Shown here piece by piece: positions 5,109-64,000 of a DNA stretch of 64,000 nucleotides. The first letter of the stretch is position 1. Each line of letters begins with the position of its first letter. The DNA lies in IMG/VR virus record IMGVR_UViG_3300020477_000990, positions 1 through 64,000 of that record; one strand, given 5' to 3'. The position numbers and the translations under genes were made by a program. Below the pieces are notes generated by a model. The model searched no databases. It was given only the letters and a program-made list of their open reading frames with translations, and was not told the origin of the DNA.

Positions 5109-6597
5109 ATTTATCGACGATATGGCAGGTAGTGGTGAAAGCAATTGCGAAGTACACTTCTTGTATAAAATTAAAGATGATATACAACTATCACAACCAT
5201 CAGCAATATTAGATGAAGGCACAGATGGATTATTAAGTGAAACATTAAACAATAATAAATTTAAAGGAAAGTTTTTAGATAGTTTCTTTATAACATCAAA
5301 TAATTTGCCTTGCCATGATGCATTGTTTATATGTGTTGGTGATCCTAATGAATTAACAGAAAGCAAAAATGAAAAAATTGGTGGAGCAATTTATAGTAAA
5401 TTGCAAGAACGTGGCACACAAGGAAAAGTATTAATTTTTATTGATGATAAAATGAAAGGTCATCCTGCAACAAATATTGGGTTTGGTATGCAGTTAAAAG
5501 AATATAAGTTTGACAAATATTTTACTAAAAAAGATAAAGAAAAAACAGACTTTGAAGTAGTTGTTTGTCGCGACGGTGTTGCATCTACAACATTAGAAAA
5601 AGAATTTATAGATAAACAAGCAATGGCTGATAGTATTGCCTTTACTAAAGATTTAATTTCTGAACCATCAAATGTATTGTATCCTAAATCATATGCTGAT
5701 AGAGTTAACGATTTAGAAAAATTTGGAATAAAAGTTACAGTATATGGTGAAAAAGAATTAAAAAAAATAGGTGCAGATGCATTATTGGCAGTTGGACAAG
5801 GTAGTGAAAGAGAATCACAAATGGTAGTAATGGAATGGCAAGGTGGTAAAAAATCTGAAAAACCTGTAGCATTTGTTGGTAAAGGAGTTTGCTTTGATAC
5901 TGGTGGGTATTCAATTAAGCCATCTAAAGGTTTAAAAGACATGAAATATGATATGGGTGGATCAGCAGTAGTTGTTGGTACTATGATGAGTATTGCAAAA
6001 CGTAATTTACCTATTAATGCAGTTGGAGTTATTGGATTAGTTGAAAATATGGTGTCTAGTACAGCATATAAGCCAGGTGATGTTATTAATTCTATGAGTG
6101 GGCAAACAATTGAAATTGATAATACAGATGCAGAAGGTAGAGTAGTATTAGCAGATTGTTTATGGTACACACAAGATAAGTTTAAACCAAAAACAATGAT
6201 TAATTTAGCAACATTAACAGGAGCAATATCAATTGCACTTGGTGATCAACTTGCTGGTATATTTTCAAATAATGATGAATTAAGTAATCAATTAATTGAT
6301 GCTGGGCATCAAGTAGATGAAAAAGTTTGGCGTTTACCATGCGATCCAATAGGAGAAAGATATGACAAGTATGTTGATTCAACTATTGCAGATATGCATA
6401 ATGTAGGTAAAGGTGGTGAAGCAAGTTCAACAACAGCGGCACAATTTTTGCAAAGGTTTGTTAATGATACTCCATGGACACATATTGATATAGCTGGAGT
6501 TACTTGGAATGATAAAGGATCTATGACAGCATCTGGTGGTGCAACTGGTTGGGGAGTTAAGCTCTTAAACAAATGGGTAGATAACCTTGATGGTTAA
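5098..6597 (+). CDS. pepA: Leucyl aminopeptidase (M17)
   Basis: VGKGVCFDTGG, MKYDMGG, NTDAEGR, ATLTGA, HIDIAG. Confidence 0.95.
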   Translation: MEIKFIDDMAGSGESNCEVHFLYKIKDDIQLSQPSAILDEGTDGLLSETLNNNKFKGKFLDSFFITSNNLPCHDALFICVGDPNELTESKNEKIGGAIYSKLQERGTQGKVLIFIDDKMKGHPATNIGFGMQLKEYKFDKYFTKKDKEKTDFEVVVCRDGVASTTLEKEFIDKQAMADSIAFTKDLISEPSNVLYPKSYADRVNDLEKFGIKVTVYGEKELKKIGADALLAVGQGSERESQMVVMEWQGGKKSEKPVAFVGKGVCFDTGGYSIKPSKGLKDMKYDMGGSAVVVGTMMSIAKRNLPINAVGVIGLVENMVSSTAYKPGDVINSMSGQTIEIDNTDAEGRVVLADCLWYTQDKFKPKTMINLATLTGAISIALGDQLAGIFSNNDELSNQLIDAGHQVDEKVWRLPCDPIGERYDKYVDSTIADMHNVGKGGEASSTTAAQFLQRFVNDTPWTHIDIAGVTWNDKGSMTASGGATGWGVKLLNKWVDNLDG

Positions 6598-8366: not shown

Positions 8367-8686
8367 TAACACTTACAGATTCAGCAAAACAACAGATTAT
8401 AGATTTGTGTAAGCAAAATGAAGTAGATGCAGTTAAGCTATCAGTAGAAGGTGGCGGATGTGCAGGCTTTAAGTATGACTGGGGATTTACTAGTAATGAT
8501 AAAATTGCATCAGATGATGAAGTTTTTGAATTAACAGAAGGTAAATTTGTAGTAGATGGTATGAGTGTGATGTATATTGCAGGTACAGAAATAGATTATG
8601 TACGTGAAGTATTTGGTTCACATTTTGAAATTAGAAATCCATCAGCATCATCGTCATGTGGCTGTGGTGAAAGCTTCGGAGTCTAA
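8363..8686 (+). CDS. iscA: A-type Fe-S carrier (IscA/HesB family)
   Basis: GGGCAGFKY and CGCGESF. Confidence 0.92.
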   Translation: MITLTDSAKQQIIDLCKQNEVDAVKLSVEGGGCAGFKYDWGFTSNDKIASDDEVFELTEGKFVVDGMSVMYIAGTEIDYVREVFGSHFEIRNPSASSSCGCGESFGV

Positions 8687-54086: not shown

Positions 54087-55178
54087 ATGGTGAAAACAAA
54101 TACAACAGAAACTAGAACAGTTAGACCAAGCGATGTTAAAGCAGAAGTTCTAGCCTGTATAGATGCAAAGAGACCTGTAATGTTATGGGGTCCTCCAGGC
54201 ATTGGAAAATCAGAAATTATTAATGAAATAGGACAAGACTTAAATCGTAATGTTATTGATTTAAGATTGTTATTATTGGAACCAACAGATTTACGTGGTA
54301 TTCCATATTTTAATTCGAAAGCGAATAAAATGGATTGGGCACCACCAGTAGATCTTCCAAGTGATCCTAAAGATAATTCAATATTATTTTTAGACGAAAT
54401 AAATGCCGCACCACAATCAGTACAGGCCGCGGCGTATCAATTAGTTCTTAATAGAAGAATTGGTACTTATAAATTACCAGATGGAGTATCAATTGTAGCG
54501 GCTGGTAATAGAGAAAGTGATAGAGGTGTTACTTATAGAATGCCTTCACCACTTGCTAACAGAATGTTACATATTGAGATGGCTGTTAATTTTGAAGATT
54601 GGCAGGATTGGGCAACCAAAAATGAAATCCATGCTGATGTAGTTGGATATTTAACATTTGCTAAAAATGATTTATATGACTTTGATCCTAGAAGTTCATC
54701 TAGAGCATTTGCAACACCAAGAAGTTGGTCGTTTGTAAGTGATATGCTAGAAACTGGAAAACTTGAAGGTTCAAGATTAACTGATATTATCACAGGGTCA
54801 GTTGGTGAAGGTCTTGCAGTAAAATTTATAGCACATAGAGATGTTGCTGGTAAATTACCTAACCCATCTGATATTTTAAGTGGTAAAGTTAAAAAACTTG
54901 ATACTAAAGAAGTTAGTGCTATGTATTCATTAATTACTTCATTATGTTATGAATTAAAAGATGAATGTGAAAAGGCTCAAAAATCTAAAAAGATGGCTGG
55001 GTGGCATAAAATGGCAGATAACTTTTTGCAGTATATGATGGATAATTTTGAAACTGAAATGGTAGTGCTAGGGGCAAGAATTGCTCTTAAAAATCATCAA
55101 CTACCGTTTAGTCCTAAAGAGCTAAAGAGCTTTAAGGACTTTTATAAGAGATATGGTAAGTTAATCGTTGACGTTTAA
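54087..55178 (+). CDS. MoxR-like AAA+ ATPase
   Basis: GPPGIGKS, LFLDEIN, AAGNR, PLANR, TPRSW. Confidence 0.9.
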   Translation: MVKTNTTETRTVRPSDVKAEVLACIDAKRPVMLWGPPGIGKSEIINEIGQDLNRNVIDLRLLLLEPTDLRGIPYFNSKANKMDWAPPVDLPSDPKDNSILFLDEINAAPQSVQAAAYQLVLNRRIGTYKLPDGVSIVAAGNRESDRGVTYRMPSPLANRMLHIEMAVNFEDWQDWATKNEIHADVVGYLTFAKNDLYDFDPRSSSRAFATPRSWSFVSDMLETGKLEGSRLTDIITGSVGEGLAVKFIAHRDVAGKLPNPSDILSGKVKKLDTKEVSAMYSLITSLCYELKDECEKAQKSKKMAGWHKMADNFLQYMMDNFETEMVVLGARIALKNHQLPFSPKELKSFKDFYKRYGKLIVDV

Positions 55179-57604: not shown

Positions 57605-58855
57605 ATGACTTTTAAAACAACAACAAAATCAAAGATTAATAAGAAGCCAAAAATAGTGGCACAAACAGATGATGAAATTCGTGAAAGAATTGTACAAAGT
57701 AGAGTAAGACTTCTTTTAAAACATCCATTCTTTGGTAATCTAGCAACAAGATTGAAACTTAAAAACGCAGATGATTTTTGTCCTACCGCGGCAACTGATG
57801 GTAGACATTTTTATTATAATAGAGAATTTATTACTCCGTTAACACCTGAAGAATTAGACTTTCTTGTAGGCCATGAAGTGATGCATTGTGTTTATGATCA
57901 TATGGAAAGAAGAGAAGGAAGAAATCCTCAAATTTGGAATATGGCAACGGACTATGTGATAAATGGTCAGCTTGTTCGTGAAGGTCTTGGTAAAATGCCA
58001 AAACAAGGATTGCACGATTCAAAATATTATGATAAAAATTCAGATGAAGTATATCAAGATTTAGAGAAAAATGCAGTAGAAATTAAAGTTACTTTAGATA
58101 TGCATATGGATGGTGAAGGTCAACAAGGTAAAGGTGATCAACAAAATCCTGGAGACAAAGATGGTGAAGGTAAAGAAAAAATGCCAGTTATGTCTAAAGA
58201 AGAAAAAGAAAAATTAAAAGACGAAGTTAAAAATGCAGTATTACAAGCGGCACAGGCGGCAGGTGCTGGTAATGTTCCAAAAGGTGTTGAAAGACTTATT
58301 AAAAATATTACAGAACCTAAAATGGATTGGCGTTCGTTATTAGATCAGCATATTACATCAGTTGTAAAATCAGACTATTCATTTATGAGACCTTCAAGAA
58401 AAGGTTGGTCAGTAGATGCAGTATTACCTGGATTACAACCAGAACCAGCAGTAGATGTATGTGTTGCAATTGATACTTCAGGTTCTATTAGTGATAAGCA
58501 GTTGCAAACATTTTTAGCTGAAGTAAAAGGTATTATGGATTCATTCCAAGATTATAAAATACATATATGGAGTTTTGATACAGATGTTCATAATCCAGAA
58601 GTGTTTACACCAGATAAAGATATTACAGATTATAAGCCTGGTGGCTTTGGTGGTACAGAATTTACTGCCAATTGGGAATGGATGAAAGAAGAAGGTATAC
58701 AGCCTAAAAAATTAATTGTATTTACAGATGGTTATCCTTGGGGTTCATGGGGTGATGAAAACTATTGTGATACACTTTGGGTAATTCATTCTAATCACGA
58801 TAAAGATTTAGAAGCACCTTTTGGTGTAACTTGTCATTATGATGAGGTTGCTTAA
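57605..58855 (+). CDS. Metallopeptidase-like (HExxH) + VWA protein, DUF2201-type MoxR partner
   Basis: TAATDG, HEVMH, IDTSGS MIDAS, GGT.F, FTDG. Confidence 0.88.
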   Translation: MTFKTTTKSKINKKPKIVAQTDDEIRERIVQSRVRLLLKHPFFGNLATRLKLKNADDFCPTAATDGRHFYYNREFITPLTPEELDFLVGHEVMHCVYDHMERREGRNPQIWNMATDYVINGQLVREGLGKMPKQGLHDSKYYDKNSDEVYQDLEKNAVEIKVTLDMHMDGEGQQGKGDQQNPGDKDGEGKEKMPVMSKEEKEKLKDEVKNAVLQAAQAAGAGNVPKGVERLIKNITEPKMDWRSLLDQHITSVVKSDYSFMRPSRKGWSVDAVLPGLQPEPAVDVCVAIDTSGSISDKQLQTFLAEVKGIMDSFQDYKIHIWSFDTDVHNPEVFTPDKDITDYKPGGFGGTEFTANWEWMKEEGIQPKKLIVFTDGYPWGSWGDENYCDTLWVIHSNHDKDLEAPFGVTCHYDEVA

Positions 58856-59785: not shown

Positions 59786-60322
59786 ATGAGTTCCACCTTA
59801 ATATTAAATTCAACTGGTTCCCCTTTAAGTTTACTTCCTATTAGTGCGGTTAATTGGCATTTATCAATTAAATTACTTGTTTTAGATAAGTTTAAGGTAT
59901 TAGATGAATATGAAGATTGGATTATCCACAGCCCATCAATGGAAATGAAAGTTCCAGCGGTAATGATAGCAAAAAGATATTTAAATTTAACAAGATATCC
60001 AAAGTTTTCGCGGGGTAATGTATATCTAAGAGATTTATTCACTTGTCAGTATTGTGGTTGTGAGCATGGCTGGAATGATTTAACATTAGATCATGTACTT
60101 CCAAGAGCAAAAGGAGGCAGGTCAGCTTGGGAAAACATTGTGACTGCCTGTCATGATTGTAATGTATCAAAAGGTGATGATAAGTTATCTCCAATGAAAG
60201 ATCCATATAAGCCACATTATTGGGAATTGGCCAATAAAAGAGCCAGGTATCCTGTTAAAGTTGGCCATCATAGTTGGGTAAAATATCTAAAATGGAATGA
60301 AAATCTTATTAATGTTGCATAA
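59786..60322 (+). CDS. HNH endonuclease
   Basis: RD.FTCQYCG, LTLDHVLPRAKGG..WENIVTAC..CN. Confidence 0.9.
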   Translation: MSSTLILNSTGSPLSLLPISAVNWHLSIKLLVLDKFKVLDEYEDWIIHSPSMEMKVPAVMIAKRYLNLTRYPKFSRGNVYLRDLFTCQYCGCEHGWNDLTLDHVLPRAKGGRSAWENIVTACHDCNVSKGDDKLSPMKDPYKPHYWELANKRARYPVKVGHHSWVKYLKWNENLINVA

Positions 60323-60382: not shown

Positions 60383-60718
60383 ATGGCCGATACTCAAGAA
60401 GTAAAAAAACAAGAAGCAGTAGCACCTAGCCCAGATCAGGCAGTTGCTCCTCAATTAACAATTGCAGACTTAACACAATTGTTGAATATAATTGATGCCG
60501 CTTCTTCAAGAGGAGCCTTCAGAGCCAATGAACTTACTAACGTTGGTAGTGTAGTTGATAAACTTTCTAAGTTTTTACAATACGTTACAGACCAACAAAA
60601 AGCAGAAGCTGAAGCGAAAGCTAAAGCAGAAGGCGGATCAGTTGACGCAGGAACCGTAAGTGGTACTGATGCATCAGCTGGAAGTGGTTCAGGTGAATCT
60701 GAAGCTTCGAAAAAATAA
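60383..60718 (+). CDS. Phage hypothetical protein
   Basis: AAGGAG RBS; IID.ASSRGAFRANEL. Confidence 0.8.
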   Translation: MADTQEVKKQEAVAPSPDQAVAPQLTIADLTQLLNIIDAASSRGAFRANELTNVGSVVDKLSKFLQYVTDQQKAEAEAKAKAEGGSVDAGTVSGTDASAGSGSGESEASKK

Positions 60719-60750
60719 ATGAATAATAATTGCAATTAAGGAGAAACATC

Positions 60751-61377
60751 ATGACTGACATGATTAAACATACAGGTAGGATAGACTCAACTAACAGACG
60801 TGTTATTGTTGTATTTCCACAAATTCCTGAAGATCAAGAAAATTGTCTTGTAGTTGATGTTGATTCATTACCAGAGAAATATCACGATGGTTTAATGAAA
60901 ATAGTTGAATCAGCAGAATCGCAAGAATCAAATCAGTTGTATGAAGTATTAGGAAGAAATTTATTTTGGGATGGTAAAAATTGTTTGTCAACTTTGCACG
61001 AACAAGGTTTTTTAAGACGTGTTCCTGTTAATACAGTTACATTATTACCAAGACCAGATCAGTCTCTTCCATTAAAAGACTTTAATGCATACCAAAGTAT
61101 GGTAGCTGAAACAAAAACAACACCAGCAGAACCTACTGATGCTCAAACTACACGAGCTGGGGATATTACAAATCCAGCAGATGAAACTGACAGCGAAGGT
61201 ATAGCAAGAAATCTTTTAGTGCAGGCAGAATTACTTGAAAATGAAGCACGTCAAAAACGTGCAGAAGCAGAACAAGTGTCACCTGGTATACAGGTTAAAT
61301 TAGGTAAAGTTACTACCGTTGTTACAAAACGTGGTAGAGGAAGACCTAAAAAAGCCGAAGCTACAACGACTGCGTAA
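60751..61377 (+). CDS. Phage hypothetical protein with C-terminal AT-hook-like RGRGRPKK
   Basis: AAGGAG RBS; basic tail. Confidence 0.75.
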   Translation: MTDMIKHTGRIDSTNRRVIVVFPQIPEDQENCLVVDVDSLPEKYHDGLMKIVESAESQESNQLYEVLGRNLFWDGKNCLSTLHEQGFLRRVPVNTVTLLPRPDQSLPLKDFNAYQSMVAETKTTPAEPTDAQTTRAGDITNPADETDSEGIARNLLVQAELLENEARQKRAEAEQVSPGIQVKLGKVTTVVTKRGRGRPKKAEATTTA

Positions 61378-61393
61378 TTAATAATTATTAATT

Positions 61394-61439
61394 AATCTGC
61401 CTATGTTTTATGATAAATATTACGTAGGCAGATTTTTTT
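61394..61439 (+). terminator. Terminator-like hairpin containing a late promoter
   Basis: AATCTGCCTATGT/ACGTAGGCAGATT plus T-run; GATAAATA (61412-61419) in loop. Confidence 0.7.
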
Positions 61440-61790
61440 ATGACAGAAGAGCAAAATTCAAATAGAAAATTTTTACCATCTAAAGAATCGGGAGATCACG
61501 ATCATGCGGAATTTAATAAAATAATGCATGAAATTGCTCCAAAAGAAATTCCAGCTAAATTTGTTGATATGATTAAAATTATCCGTAAAGATGGAACTGT
61601 TACTAATATGACAAGAGATGATATTGTTAATACTGTTCCTCTTGCAGGTCCAGTTGATTGGGAAAGCATAGCTGGTAATTATCATGATATCCGCGATATG
61701 GAAATTTATATAGATATGGATGCCTTAGAATATACAGTTCATAAAAATGTTCATCGAATGCTTGGTAAATTCTTTAAAAAAAGCAATTAA
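61440..61790 (+). CDS. Hypothetical protein
   Basis: ORF. Confidence 0.7.
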   Translation: MTEEQNSNRKFLPSKESGDHDHAEFNKIMHEIAPKEIPAKFVDMIKIIRKDGTVTNMTRDDIVNTVPLAGPVDWESIAGNYHDIRDMEIYIDMDALEYTVHKNVHRMLGKFFKKSN

Positions 61791-61821
61791 TTGACAATCT
61801 TATTAAAATATGTTATAAATA
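61791..61821 (+). promoter_or_regulatory. Overlapping early and late promoter
   Basis: TTGACA-N17-TATAAA; the -10 also reads TATAAATA. Confidence 0.7.
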
Positions 61822-61866
61822 CTAATACAAATTACCGTATTAAACAATAGGGGTTGGGGTAATATT

Positions 61867-62418
61867 ATGATAAAAACTATTTTAGCATTTCTTTATATTT
61901 CAGGCATTCTTGCCTTGGGAAGATTAATTCCACATCCACCAAACTTAACACCAATATTAGCCGCGGCTATTTTCGCTCCATACATTATTAATGATCGTTG
62001 GACAGCAATTGCAATTCCTTTAATGGCGATGTTTATTGCAGATTTAGTTATAGGGTTTCATCCATATATGTTATGGGTCTATGGTGCAATAGGTTTATCA
62101 ACTTTAATTAGTAAATGGTCAATGCAATTTAATAAAAAGTATATTCAATTAGGAGCAATGACAATAGTATCTTCTGTATTATTTTTTATAATAACAAATT
62201 TTGCAGTATGGACTATGTGGGATTACTATCCAAAAACATTAGATGGTTTAATAATGTGTTATACAATGGCAATACCATTTTTTCAAAATACATTATTAGG
62301 AACTATAATATATACAGCTCTAATGGCATCTTTAACTGTAGCATTAACTCGACCTTTTGAAAATACCTATGTACTGGTAATAAGCAAAGGAAGAGATTAT
62401 GTTAACAAACATTTTTAA
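61867..62418 (+). CDS. BtuM-like (DUF6580) ECF S-component membrane transporter
   Basis: RLIPHPPNLTPI, SSVLFFIITNFAVW, YP.T..GL..CY..AIPFF.N; ~6 TM. Confidence 0.78.
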   Translation: MIKTILAFLYISGILALGRLIPHPPNLTPILAAAIFAPYIINDRWTAIAIPLMAMFIADLVIGFHPYMLWVYGAIGLSTLISKWSMQFNKKYIQLGAMTIVSSVLFFIITNFAVWTMWDYYPKTLDGLIMCYTMAIPFFQNTLLGTIIYTALMASLTVALTRPFENTYVLVISKGRDYVNKHF

Positions 62419-64000
62419 GTTAATAATAATATTTTTTATTTTTTTAGGAACAGCAAAAGCAAACGAATGCTATTGGGAAGAAATGAAAGACGAAACAATC
62501 GTTTGTGATTCGTTAGTTATTAATATACCAATATTTTTTACACAAACACCTTCACATAGAAGTAATGAAATACATAATAACGAATACATATTTCCAGACA
62601 ACGAAAGTATTCTAACAGATGCATTAAATGATGTAGCAAATTTTAATGCAGTACGTTCTGGATCAAAAGGACAACAAACATCGTTGTTTACTAGAGGAAC
62701 AAATTCAAATCATACATTAGTAACAATAAACGGATCAGCAATTACAGATCACTCAACAACTAATGGAGCAACAGATCTTAACAATGTAAATATAAATTTT
62801 GCAGATGGTATACATTTGTATACAGGTCCTATGAGTACTATATATGGACCTAATGCAATAGGTGGTGTAGTTGATATTAAAACAAGTGATGTTAAAGAAA
62901 ATGAAGTAGTAGTTACTTATGGATCTAACAATACCAAACAAACACATATTACAATTAGTGAAGGACTTACAAACTTTGGAATAAATTTTGAAGAATCAGA
63001 TGGTATATCAGTTTATCCAAAAGGTGATGAAAAAGATGGATACAACATACTTGGATTTAACTTTGGGCATTTAACAAAAATTGATAATACAGAAATTAAA
63101 ATAACAGGAATAACAAATAATACAGAATCAGATTTAGATGCCTCGGGTGCAGATGATTTAGACTATACAGCAGATACTAAATTCCATTTTGGACAAATAC
63201 AAACGTCTACAGAATTTGATGATGGAATTCTTAAATCAGTTTTAGATGCTACCTATTGGGATAGAGAATATGTAAATGGAACTGAACTTGATGAATATGA
63301 TTCTTCAGCTATACATTCAGCAACTGATTGGATAACACACACAGACAAAGTATCAACTAAAACTGGAATAGATACTGTTTGGTATAGTGCAGAATTTAAC
63401 AACAGAGGATCTTATAATTCTTCTGTAGATAAAGAAGCAAATACAACTGGAATATATCATAACTTTGATTATGTAACTGATTTAGATATAGTAGTGTCAG
63501 GTGGTTTACGTTATGATTATAATTCAATAGTAGAAGGGCAATCAACATACAGGGTTGGTACAGCATACAAAGGACTTTACTTTAGTAGGTCAACAGGGTA
63601 TAGAGCACCAACACTATATGAATTATATGGTGCAGACAATTACGGGTATAGTGGTAATGAAAATTTAAAAGCAGAAACTTCTGTAACAAATGAAGTAGGA
63701 TATAAATTTGGTAACCAAACGGTAAATGGTAATATTAGTGTTTACTCTACAAAAATAGAAGATATGATTACATACGGAAATTCTACTTATAGTAATGACA
63801 GTAATGGTACGTCAACAATGAAAGGTGGAGATATAAAACTTAACTACTACAAAGGAAATTATGGTTTTCATAATAGTATAGCATTTACGTCAGCACAAGA
63901 CTCAACTGATAATTGGTTAAAAAGAAGACCACATACGATTATCAATTCATCAGTTAGTTATTATAAAGATGATTTTTATATTTCTCCAAGTATAAATTAT
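62399..64000 (+). CDS. btuB: TonB-dependent receptor, BtuB-like (partial, runs off window; not in ORF track)
   Basis: Hand translation open for 534 codons: signal peptide, SGSKGQQTSLFTRGTNSNHTLV, GPMSTIYGPNAIGGVV, TGYRAPTLYELYG..GNENLKAE. Confidence 0.85.
   Translation, partial: MLTNIFKLIIIFFIFLGTAKANECYWEEMKDETIVCDSLVINIPIFFTQTPSHRSNEIHNNEYIFPDNESILTDALNDVANFNAVRSGSKGQQTSLFTRGTNSNHTLVTINGSAITDHSTTNGATDLNNVNINFADGIHLYTGPMSTIYGPNAIGGVVDIKTSDVKENEVVVTYGSNNTKQTHITISEGLTNFGINFEESDGISVYPKGDEKDGYNILGFNFGHLTKIDNTEIKITGITNNTESDLDASGADDLDYTADTKFHFGQIQTSTEFDDGILKSVLDATYWDREYVNGTELDEYDSSAIHSATDWITHTDKVSTKTGIDTVWYSAEFNNRGSYNSSVDKEANTTGIYHNFDYVTDLDIVVSGGLRYDYNSIVEGQSTYRVGTAYKGLYFSRSTGYRAPTLYELYGADNYGYSGNENLKAETSVTNEVGYKFGNQTVNGNISVYSTKIEDMITYGNSTYSNDSNGTSTMKGGDIKLNYYKGNYGFHNSIAFTSAQDSTDNWLKRRPHTIINSSVSYYKDDFYISPSINY

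Follow-up and report, generated by a model that had tools for sequence, protein, structure and literature searches.

A giant marine T4-like phage carries a BtuB-type receptor gene and a DUF6580 gene that probably serve vitamin B12 import

Why should a phage encode an outer-membrane receptor of the vitamin B12 type together with a small membrane protein, and may both together import B12 into the infected cell? This question was raised by the end of a 64,000-nucleotide stretch of DNA, positions 1 to 64,000 of the IMG/VR record IMGVR_UViG_3300020477_000990, which is named the window here. An earlier note, made from the sequence alone, had interpreted positions 61791 to 64000 as a phage-encoded module of a BtuM-like and a BtuB-like protein for B12 uptake across two membranes, preceded by a combined early/late promoter but not by a cobalamin riboswitch. 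The core of this interpretation agreed with every test that could be performed, although uptake itself is inferred, and the assignment of the small protein to BtuM had to be corrected.

Evaluation of the locus needs to consider first whether the DNA is that of a phage or of its host. The 328-kb contig is a virus record with direct terminal repeats and was rated 100% complete by CheckV. It carries genes for a T4 gp23-type capsid protein, a large terminase, and a family B DNA polymerase, and phage genes continue downstream of the gene pair. This is a T4-like jumbo phage and not host DNA.

Both open reading frames exist as described in the note. The first, at 61867 to 62418 on the plus strand, encodes a protein of 183 amino acids that matched Pfam DUF6580 (PF20221) at an E value of 7.6e-44, with 150.2 bits compared to a cutoff of 27 and over model positions 7 to 157 of 162, which was confirmed by a genome scan. 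The second starts at 62399 on the plus strand, overlaps the first by 20 nt, and is cut by the end of the window at 64000; in the whole contig, it continues for another 213 nt to the stop at 64213, yielding 604 amino acids. An AGGA ribosome-binding site is located 7 nt upstream of its ATG. The product contains a Sec-type signal peptide (amino acids 1 to 21), a plug domain (72 to 157; E = 1.9e-15), a TonB_dep_Rec barrel (232 to 604; E = 5.4e-21), and a C-terminal phenylalanine, with the sequence ending in WKF. Its AF2 model had a pLDDT of 86 and showed a full barrel. This is an intact TonB-dependent receptor.

The sequence upstream of the pair contains a TTGACA-17-TGTTATAAATA promoter motif. The −35 hexamer TTGACA at 61791 to 61796 begins directly after the TAA stop codon (61788 to 61790) of an upstream open reading frame of 116 amino acids and is followed by a 17-nt spacer and by TGT-TATAAATA at 61811 to 61821. 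The latter is an extended −10 site (TGn-TATAAA), which reads at the same time as the T4-type late-promoter octamer TATAAATA (61814 to 61821). In this genome, TTGACA-N16-18-TATAA[AT] occurred 12 times on the plus strand and 0 times on the minus strand, compared to 1.15 expected. The octamer TATAAATA occurred 25 times on the plus strand and 4 times on the minus strand, and 17 of the 25 sites were within 60 nt upstream of the start of an open reading frame, a region comprising 6.8% of the genome positions. This indicates that both motifs behave as promoters in this genome. TTGAC was invariant in five related contigs and TGTTATAAATA was invariant in relatives.

A 45-nt leader (61822 to 61866) with a G-rich ribosome-binding region (GGGGTTGGGG, 61850 to 61859) follows. 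It is nearly invariant across relatives with proteins that are only 62 to 77% identical, but neither a folding signal (z = −0.32) nor covariation was found that would indicate a hidden RNA element. No cobalamin-type Rfam match at an E value of ≤10 was obtained in contig positions 60001 to 65000, and the intergenic gap is only 76 nt. A riboswitch was also absent from the near relative L101. Metatranscriptome contigs cover pieces of the receptor gene at 96 to 97% identity, but they are short, may represent DNA carryover, and cannot show transcription or a 5′ end.

Is the receptor indeed BtuB-like? The best NCBIfam matches were TIGR01779 (TonB-B12) with 146.9 bits, compared to 72 bits for the next subfamily, heme receptors, and NF007926 with 119.3 bits. 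Both scores are far below the equivalog cutoffs of 599.7 and 836, respectively, but these were nevertheless the two best families by a wide margin. A sequence search of PDB gave BtuB at 1e-17 and Cir at 4e-07, and the 12 best Foldseek matches in PDB were all BtuB entries (E values of 1e-37 to 1e-32; TM, 0.82/0.85) before the first siderophore receptor at 1e-28. The alignment to Escherichia coli BtuB (PDB 1NQH, 2GSK) was end to end, with 27% identity over 576 columns (E = 3e-33), and both proteins are similar in size, with 604 and 614 amino acids as precursors. In contrast to E. coli BtuB, the phage protein has a short cysteine-containing N-terminal extension before the presumed TonB box and is not under the control of a riboswitch. 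In a phylogenetic tree, FepA and CirA were excluded with a support of 99, and the phage clade was the sister of riboswitch-linked receptors with a support of 92, but E. coli BtuB was on an unresolved long branch and could not be resolved against FhuA and FecA. The AU test gave a p value of 0.45 for a grouping with BtuB and of 0.068 for a grouping with siderophore receptors, which disfavors the latter but does not formally reject it.

The small protein is not a member of the BtuM family but BtuM-like in predicted fold and gene context only. Its model shows the six-helix fold of an ECF S component, with the best Z score of 14.3 for BtuM of Thiobacillus denitrificans (PMC6072759; PDB 8OVV, 8C7P), a solitary B12 transporter that is likewise about 20 kDa, encoded next to a btuB-type gene, and not accompanied by an ECF module. 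The identity, however, is 13%. Neither a single-sequence phmmer search (E ≤ 1), which gave no hit at all, nor a profile of 60 sequences (E ≤ 10) found a BtuM chain among the PDB chains, which include BtuM entries. The invariant and essential Cys80 in loop 3 of BtuM, a cobalt ligand (PMC6072759), has no counterpart: loop 3 of DUF6580 reads G63-F-H65, and the only cysteine, C130, is located near helix 6 and is replaced by alanine or serine in several members of the 60-sequence alignment. The only PDB chain reached by the profile was the 182-amino-acid “Membrane protein” chain of 6FNP (6fnp_A), presumably CbrT, the B12-specific S component of ECF-CbrT from Lactobacillus delbrueckii (PMC5997447). 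This match was marginal (E = 0.04) and covered 84 positions in helices 1 to 3, including the R..PHPPN loop region. Solitary CbrT does not transport without an ECF module (PMC5997447), CbrT needs EcfT and EcfAA′, and no EcfT was found in the phage genome. Moreover, CbrT is from Firmicutes, whereas the DUF6580 loci analyzed here are mostly those of Gram-negative marine bacteria with outer-membrane receptors.

The assignment to B12 rests mainly on the context of these genes. Of 80 bacterial DUF6580 loci, 24 have a receptor gene within 4 kb; 17 of 18 of those tested carry a Cobalamin or AdoCbl-II riboswitch, 10 of them in the order riboswitch-receptor-DUF6580 on one strand. Eight of 20 loci without a detected receptor also carry such a riboswitch, in three or four cases directly in front of DUF6580, resulting in 25 of 38 loci altogether. 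Chromosomal, uncharacterized operons of riboswitch, receptor gene, and DUF6580 occur in SAR116, Pelagibacteraceae, Neomarinimicrobiota, Ignavibacteria, and others, usually with the receptor gene preceding DUF6580. The closest DUF6580 protein (68% identity) is that of a SAR116 single-cell genome. The closest cellular relatives of the receptor, at two loci designated L094 (47% identity) and L098 (45%), are each encoded directly behind an AdoCbl-II riboswitch, and in L094, the neighbors are DUF6580 and a B12-binding radical SAM gene.

A similar context is present in viruses. At least 80 IMG/VR contigs carry DUF6580, 35 of them together with the receptor gene, with translational coupling in 23 loci and adjacent genes in 12 more, and the pair is syntenic in related contigs. 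The viral contigs L096, L116, L126, and L170 keep an AdoCbl-II riboswitch inside the same module, and L096/L097 has genes for terminase, UvsX, and UvsW beside it. On the other hand, a tblastn search of 50,697 GenBank phage records with DUF6580 gave no match, the receptor matched only bacterial contamination or short fragments there, and PHROGs contained no family for DUF6580 and only an unnamed family for the receptor.

Which phage enzyme may require the cofactor? No NrdJ or MetH is encoded, although the note had suggested to look for both, and the ribonucleotide reductase of the phage is class I, composed of NrdA with an ATP-cone plus NrdB; the reductases of relatives also scored below the NrdJ cutoff. 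A TonB protein was not found either (no TonB_C), and one weakly MotA/ExbB/TolQ-like protein at 281 kb of the contig is too ambiguous to be regarded as an energizer. Five genes downstream of the pair, at contig positions 68294 to 70075, is the gene for a radical SAM protein of 593 amino acids that scored 156.6 bits (E = 7e-46) to NF033712, the KedN5 methylcobalamin-dependent family. A scan of the genome for the Pfam B12-binding domain (PF02310) was negative but too insensitive for this divergent domain, which gave a weak hit of 18 bits when the protein was scanned directly. The gene is part of the same tightly packed plus-strand gene block, together with those for SufBCD and four further radical SAM genes. 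Similar genes occur in four of six other scanned viral records with the module (G001, G003, G005, and G006), and a 92%-identical homologue is located in the locus of a seventh, G004. This makes the enzyme the likely consumer, albeit on the basis of proximity and co-occurrence without a control set. It is not the orthologue of the B12 radical SAM gene product beside DUF6580 in L094 (20% identity), so that the three genes were not captured as one block.

Taken together, the two overlapping genes probably form a phage-carried import module for corrinoids. The receptor should be exported through Sec and inserted into the outer membrane of the host, where it would take up a cobalamin-type ligand using the TonB-ExbBD energy of an unknown host, and the DUF6580 protein, as a solitary S-component-like candidate carrier, would move the ligand across the inner membrane. 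All these steps are inferred; no transport or binding experiment exists for any DUF6580 protein or for this receptor clade. In this explanation, the module derives from bacterial operons of the form cobalamin riboswitch-receptor-DUF6580, and the riboswitch was replaced in this phage lineage by the conserved promoter reading as both sigma-70 type and T4-late type. Expression is therefore no longer shut off by B12 and may run through infection, likely to supply the cofactor to the cobalamin-dependent radical SAM methyltransferase-like enzyme.

Other explanations are unlikely but not excluded. The module may handle a corrinoid-related compound other than finished B12, for instance, cobinamide, pseudocobalamin, or a lower-ligand precursor, or DUF6580 may be a membrane-bound corrinoid-processing or chaperone protein instead of a transporter. 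Linkage to the riboswitch shows membership in the B12 regulon but not substrate identity, BtuM also decyanates B12 (PMC6072759), and CbrT binds both cobalamin and cobinamide (PMC5997447). DUF6580 has an invariant His23, a near-invariant Asp59, and His65 in most members but no invariant cysteine, so its chemistry would differ from that of BtuM. However, no enzyme-like domain was detected, the predicted fold is that of substrate-capturing S components, and the usual pairing with an outer-membrane importer fits a serial transport route.

Alternatively, and slightly less likely, the receptor may alter the cell surface as a decoy or replacement, a possibility also mentioned in the note, that blocks superinfection by phages or bacteriocins using the BtuB-type receptor of the host, or it may serve adsorption or release of the phage itself. 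BtuB is a classical receptor for phages and colicins (BF23, PMC10644984; the BtuB-colicin E3 structure was among the fold matches), the viral receptors carry the short N-terminal extension, often with two cysteines, that the closest bacterial relatives lack, and loss of the riboswitch gives B12-independent expression. A decoy, on the other hand, needs no inner-membrane partner such as that coupled or adjacent in the viral loci, several viral versions keep a B12-sensing riboswitch, which makes sense for nutrient homeostasis, and many phage contigs carry DUF6580 alone. Import of a siderophore, heme, or another metal chelate for the Fe-S machinery, with DUF6580 unrelated to B12, is the least likely explanation, because, despite the location directly upstream of SufB, SufC, SufD, and several radical SAM genes, the L098 receptor gene right after a Suf operon, weaker NCBIfam hits to heme and siderophore receptor families, and the AU test result, BtuB was the best match at every level, the mature protein of about 583 amino acids has the size of BtuB instead of that of siderophore receptors with 700 to 800 amino acids, the L098 receptor is itself behind an AdoCbl-II riboswitch, and the DUF6580 loci are strongly linked to riboswitches.

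A TonB-dependent receptor in a large marine phage has been reported before, as an auxiliary gene of the megaphage Mar_Mega_1 (PMC9723777), but that receptor was annotated as SusC (carbohydrate) type, and an inner-membrane partner, a riboswitch, or a link to B12 was not reported. In the literature searched, no paper was found that describes a phage-encoded B12 import route across both membranes or phage-borne cobalamin riboswitches. Vitamin B12 is scarce in the ocean, made by few microbes, and limits many plankton. Infected cells would become B12 sinks under viral control if the module is functional. It is possible, although somewhat less likely than not, that a cosmopolitan group of marine T4-like jumbo phages (about 330 to 440 kb by CheckV estimates) runs its own B12 supply chain, with DUF6580 as a third, previously unrecognized family of solitary S-component-type B12 transporters, and with the module governed, depending on the lineage, by a phage-borne AdoCbl-II riboswitch or by a constitutive early-plus-late promoter. 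It would feed phage-encoded cobalamin-dependent radical SAM methyltransferases, and infection would redirect the flux of a scarce micronutrient. The radical SAM gene points to cobalamin-dependent chemistry in jumbo phages with an unknown product. For DUF6580, these data give the first strong functional lead; it would be a riboswitch-regulated inner-membrane B12 carrier in Gram-negative bacteria that lack BtuCDF-type annotation, and this family has thousands of members, with 4457 representative clusters at an E value of ≤0.001.

The window is the first 64 kb of a single contig of 328,149 bp whose two ends repeat the same tRNA-Ala. The contig is an IMG/VR virus record with direct terminal repeats, was rated 100% complete by CheckV, has a GC content of about 31%, and carries almost all of its genes on the + strand. 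It is a T4-like jumbo phage, with a gp23-type major capsid protein (PF07068, E 6e-97) at 207 kb, a large terminase at 228.6 kb, a family B DNA polymerase at 33-36 kb, and a tail-fibre-like protein of 1845 aa. The possibility named in the earlier note, that the contig becomes host chromosome at the gene pair, is therefore not borne out. Phage genes are located on both sides of the pair, and the same gene order recurs in the independent metagenomic contigs L003-L006 and in the IMG/VR contigs L101, L103 and L115. A marine metatranscriptome run (X3) held a 421-nt contig, at a word depth of 77, that was 100% identical to window positions 60552-60972, a stretch spanning the end of a 111-aa ORF and the start of a 215-aa ORF, and this exact phage seems to be present, and this region is abundant, in that RNA library.

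Both ORFs of the pair are real. ORF A (61867-62418, 183 aa) is Pfam DUF6580 (E 7.6e-44). ORF B starts at position 62399, 20 nt inside ORF A and behind an AGGA ribosome-binding site, and ends at contig position 64213, giving a protein of 604 aa with a Sec signal peptide (…GTAKA|NE), a Plug domain, a TonB-dependent-receptor barrel and a terminal Phe. The viral receptors carry a short N-terminal extension before the presumed TonB box (ECYWEEMKDETIVCDS here, window 62462-62533, receptor aa 22-45), often with two cysteines, which the closest bacterial relatives lack.

In a comparison of the receptor with the NCBIfam models, TonB-B12 (TIGR01779, 146.9 bits) and BtuB (NF007926, 119.3 bits) ranked first and the next subfamily (heme/transferrin) scored 72 bits, although both B12 scores were far below the equivalog cut-offs. 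The best PDB sequences were those of E. coli BtuB (1e-17), well ahead of Cir (4e-07), and a BLASTP alignment with MG1655 BtuB extended from the plug to the C terminus with 27% identity over 576 columns (E 3e-33). When an AlphaFold model of the receptor (pLDDT 86) was used in a fold search, twelve BtuB entries were found first (E 1e-37 to 1e-32, TM 0.82/0.85, rmsd 3.0-3.6 A), followed by siderophore and copper receptors from 1e-28. In a maximum-likelihood tree of 50 sequences, the phage protein was placed in a fully supported clade of 31 rows, which contained receptors from viral contigs plus a few cellular ones and grouped (SH-aLRT 92) with cobalamin-riboswitch-linked receptors of SAR116 and Pelagibacteraceae. 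FepA and CirA were excluded (99), whereas E. coli BtuB, FhuA and FecA were located on unresolved long branches. In AU tests, holding all candidate B12 receptors, including E. coli BtuB, as one clade cost 0.8 log-likelihood units (p 0.45), and forcing the phage clade together with the four siderophore receptors cost 15.4 units (p 0.068). The tree is therefore compatible with the B12 reading and leans against a siderophore grouping, but it is not decisive alone.

For the small membrane protein, neither a search of PDB with the single sequence nor one with a 60-sequence profile found BtuM. The only hit was the 182-aa membrane chain of entry 6FNP, the ECF-CbrT vitamin B12 transporter, at a marginal E value of 0.04. 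The AlphaFold model (pLDDT 91) is a six-helix ECF S-component, and the top Foldseek matches were S-components. The family has invariant R19, P22, H23 and N26 residues (the loop-1 motif R-x-x-P-H-P-P-N), as well as invariant G63, F106, Y121, G127 and P137, while D59 is near-invariant. The loop-3 cysteine that defines BtuM (PMC6072759) is absent, and the frequent Cys130 is replaced in several members. The designation "BtuM-like" in the earlier note is thus appropriate with respect to predicted fold and gene context, but DUF6580 is not a member of the BtuM family.

The B12 assignment rests mainly on gene context. A scan of one genome per species returned at least 581 DUF6580 loci, of which 80 were kept, and 24 of these 80 had a TonB-dependent receptor within 4 kb. 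Of 18 such loci searched with Rfam at gathering thresholds, 17 had a Cobalamin (RF00174) or AdoCbl-II (RF01689) riboswitch directly upstream of the receptor, and ten were arranged as riboswitch-receptor-DUF6580 on one strand. Of 20 loci without a detected receptor, 8 still carried such a riboswitch, several of them immediately upstream of DUF6580, so that in total 25 of 38 loci were riboswitch-linked. The closest cellular relatives of the phage receptor, in the loci L094 and L098, were 47% and 45% identical, respectively, and both have an AdoCbl-II riboswitch ending about 30 nt before the receptor start. In L094, the divergent neighbours are DUF6580 and a 606-aa B12-binding radical SAM gene. 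In L098, from a low-GC (26%) marine single-cell genome (GCA_902579955.1), the receptor follows a Suf operon, the SufB of which (L098:1-921) is 84% identical to the phage SufB (contig 65019-66485), whereas SufC (40%) and SufD (32%) are much less similar. This is a lead to a host or donor.

Other viral contigs keep an AdoCbl-II riboswitch (78-93 bits against a gathering score of 36.5) directly upstream of, or within, the DUF6580-receptor module. These are L096 (4348-4426), with terminase, UvsX and UvsW genes nearby (L096/L097), L116 (7818-7898), L126 (7812-7890) on a 243-kb contig, and L170 (8447-8527), where the riboswitch is located between the two genes. In a further viral contig, L136, a glutamine riboswitch lies upstream of the receptor and a "freshwater-2" RNA after DUF6580 (5713-5760 and 8510-8589), and another one, L153 (14670-15049), carries an alpha-type permuted tmRNA and five tRNAs next to the module. 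A SusC-like receptor has been noted in a marine megaphage (PMC9723777), but no report of phage-encoded BtuB-type receptors, DUF6580, or phage-borne cobalamin riboswitches was found in the part of the literature that could be searched. The system would work like BtuB plus BtuM but with a different inner-membrane family, and it is located in a virus.

A scan of IMG/VR with one peptide pattern gave 82 confirmed viral contigs, of which 80 were kept. An adjacent receptor was present in 35 of them, with the order DUF6580 then receptor in 23, the two ORFs overlapping in most, and the reverse order in 12, while others carried DUF6580 alone, for example after DnaB. The larger contigs were rated 16-67% complete, which implies genomes of roughly 330-440 kb.

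In the phage itself, no cobalamin-type RNA was found at E<=10 in contig 60001-65000. The 76-nt gap upstream of ORF A holds TTGACA, 17 nt, and then TGT-TATAAATA. The sigma-70-type pattern TTGACA-N16-18-TATAA[AT] occurs 12 times on the + strand and never on the - strand, against 1.15 expected, and most sites are located 16-76 nt before an ORF. The T4 late-type octamer TATAAATA is rarer than chance overall but strand-biased 25:4, and 17 of the 25 + strand sites lie within 60 nt upstream of an ORF start, where 6.8% of genome positions lie. The "combined early/late promoter" of the earlier note is therefore a reasonable reading. The promoter and the whole 45-nt leader (window 61822-61866) are almost invariant in five related contigs whose proteins are only 62-77% identical. 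No thermodynamic or covariation signal of an RNA structure explains this conservation, and a binding site for a translational regulator is one possibility. No terminator-like site separates the receptor from the next ten abutting + strand genes. A 9-bp hairpin (CTGCCTATG ... CGTAGGCAG) followed by ATTTTTTT, located further upstream at 61397-61439, after ORF 60730-61377 and directly before the ATG at 61440, looks like an intrinsic terminator and was missed by the consensus scan.

Classical B12 enzymes and the energising system were absent: no MetH-type B12-binding domain was detected at the sensitivity of a genome scan, the ribonucleotide reductase is a class I enzyme rather than NrdJ, and no TonB was found. 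A 187-aa protein of the MotA/ExbB/TolQ family (Pfam 34 bits; weak TolQ, ZorA and ExbB NCBIfam hits) is located next to DnaK at contig 281253-283096 (L012:1210-3053), followed by two membrane-anchored proteins with no family match. This could be a phage proton-channel stator, but no link to the receptor is shown.

A candidate consumer of B12 is encoded downstream of the pair, in a dense + strand block just beyond the window (contig 64267-79657, L001:4267-19657). The block contains a fatty-acid desaturase-like gene, SufB, two SDR-like genes, GNAT, a radical SAM gene, a 254-aa ORF with no family match, SufC, a short SufD and a 2OG oxygenase, and then, after two - strand genes, four more radical SAM/SPASM genes, three of them with twitch domains, and Asp/Asn beta-hydroxylase-like genes. 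It looks like a biosynthetic or modification pathway with its own Fe-S assembly. The 593-aa radical SAM protein (contig 68294-70075) best matches the KedN5 family of methylcobalamin-dependent radical SAM C-methyltransferases (156.6 bits, E 7e-46), albeit below the family cut-off. It also gives weaker hits to other B12-radical-SAM families, and a weak Pfam B12-binding hit lies N-terminal to the radical SAM core. Its homologue is 91-92% identical in L101, L103 and L115, which is more conserved than the transport genes. Similar genes occur in the viral records G001, G005 and G006, and B12-binding radical SAM genes occur in G003. That the module supplies this enzyme is inferred and is the least secure step of the interpretation.

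The two genes are thus likely to form a corrinoid uptake module, with the insertion of the receptor into the outer membrane, its dependence on the TonB of the host, the corrinoid specificity, the inner-membrane transport by DUF6580 and the timing of expression all being inferred. A different corrinoid-related substrate or activity of DUF6580 is less likely, as is a role of the receptor as a surface decoy or in exclusion. Uptake of iron or heme for the Fe-S cluster genes is also less likely. A MoxR-type AAA ATPase (window 54087-55178) and a DUF2201 metallopeptidase/VWA protein (window 57605-58855) are encoded a few kb upstream of the pair and are conserved in the related contigs.
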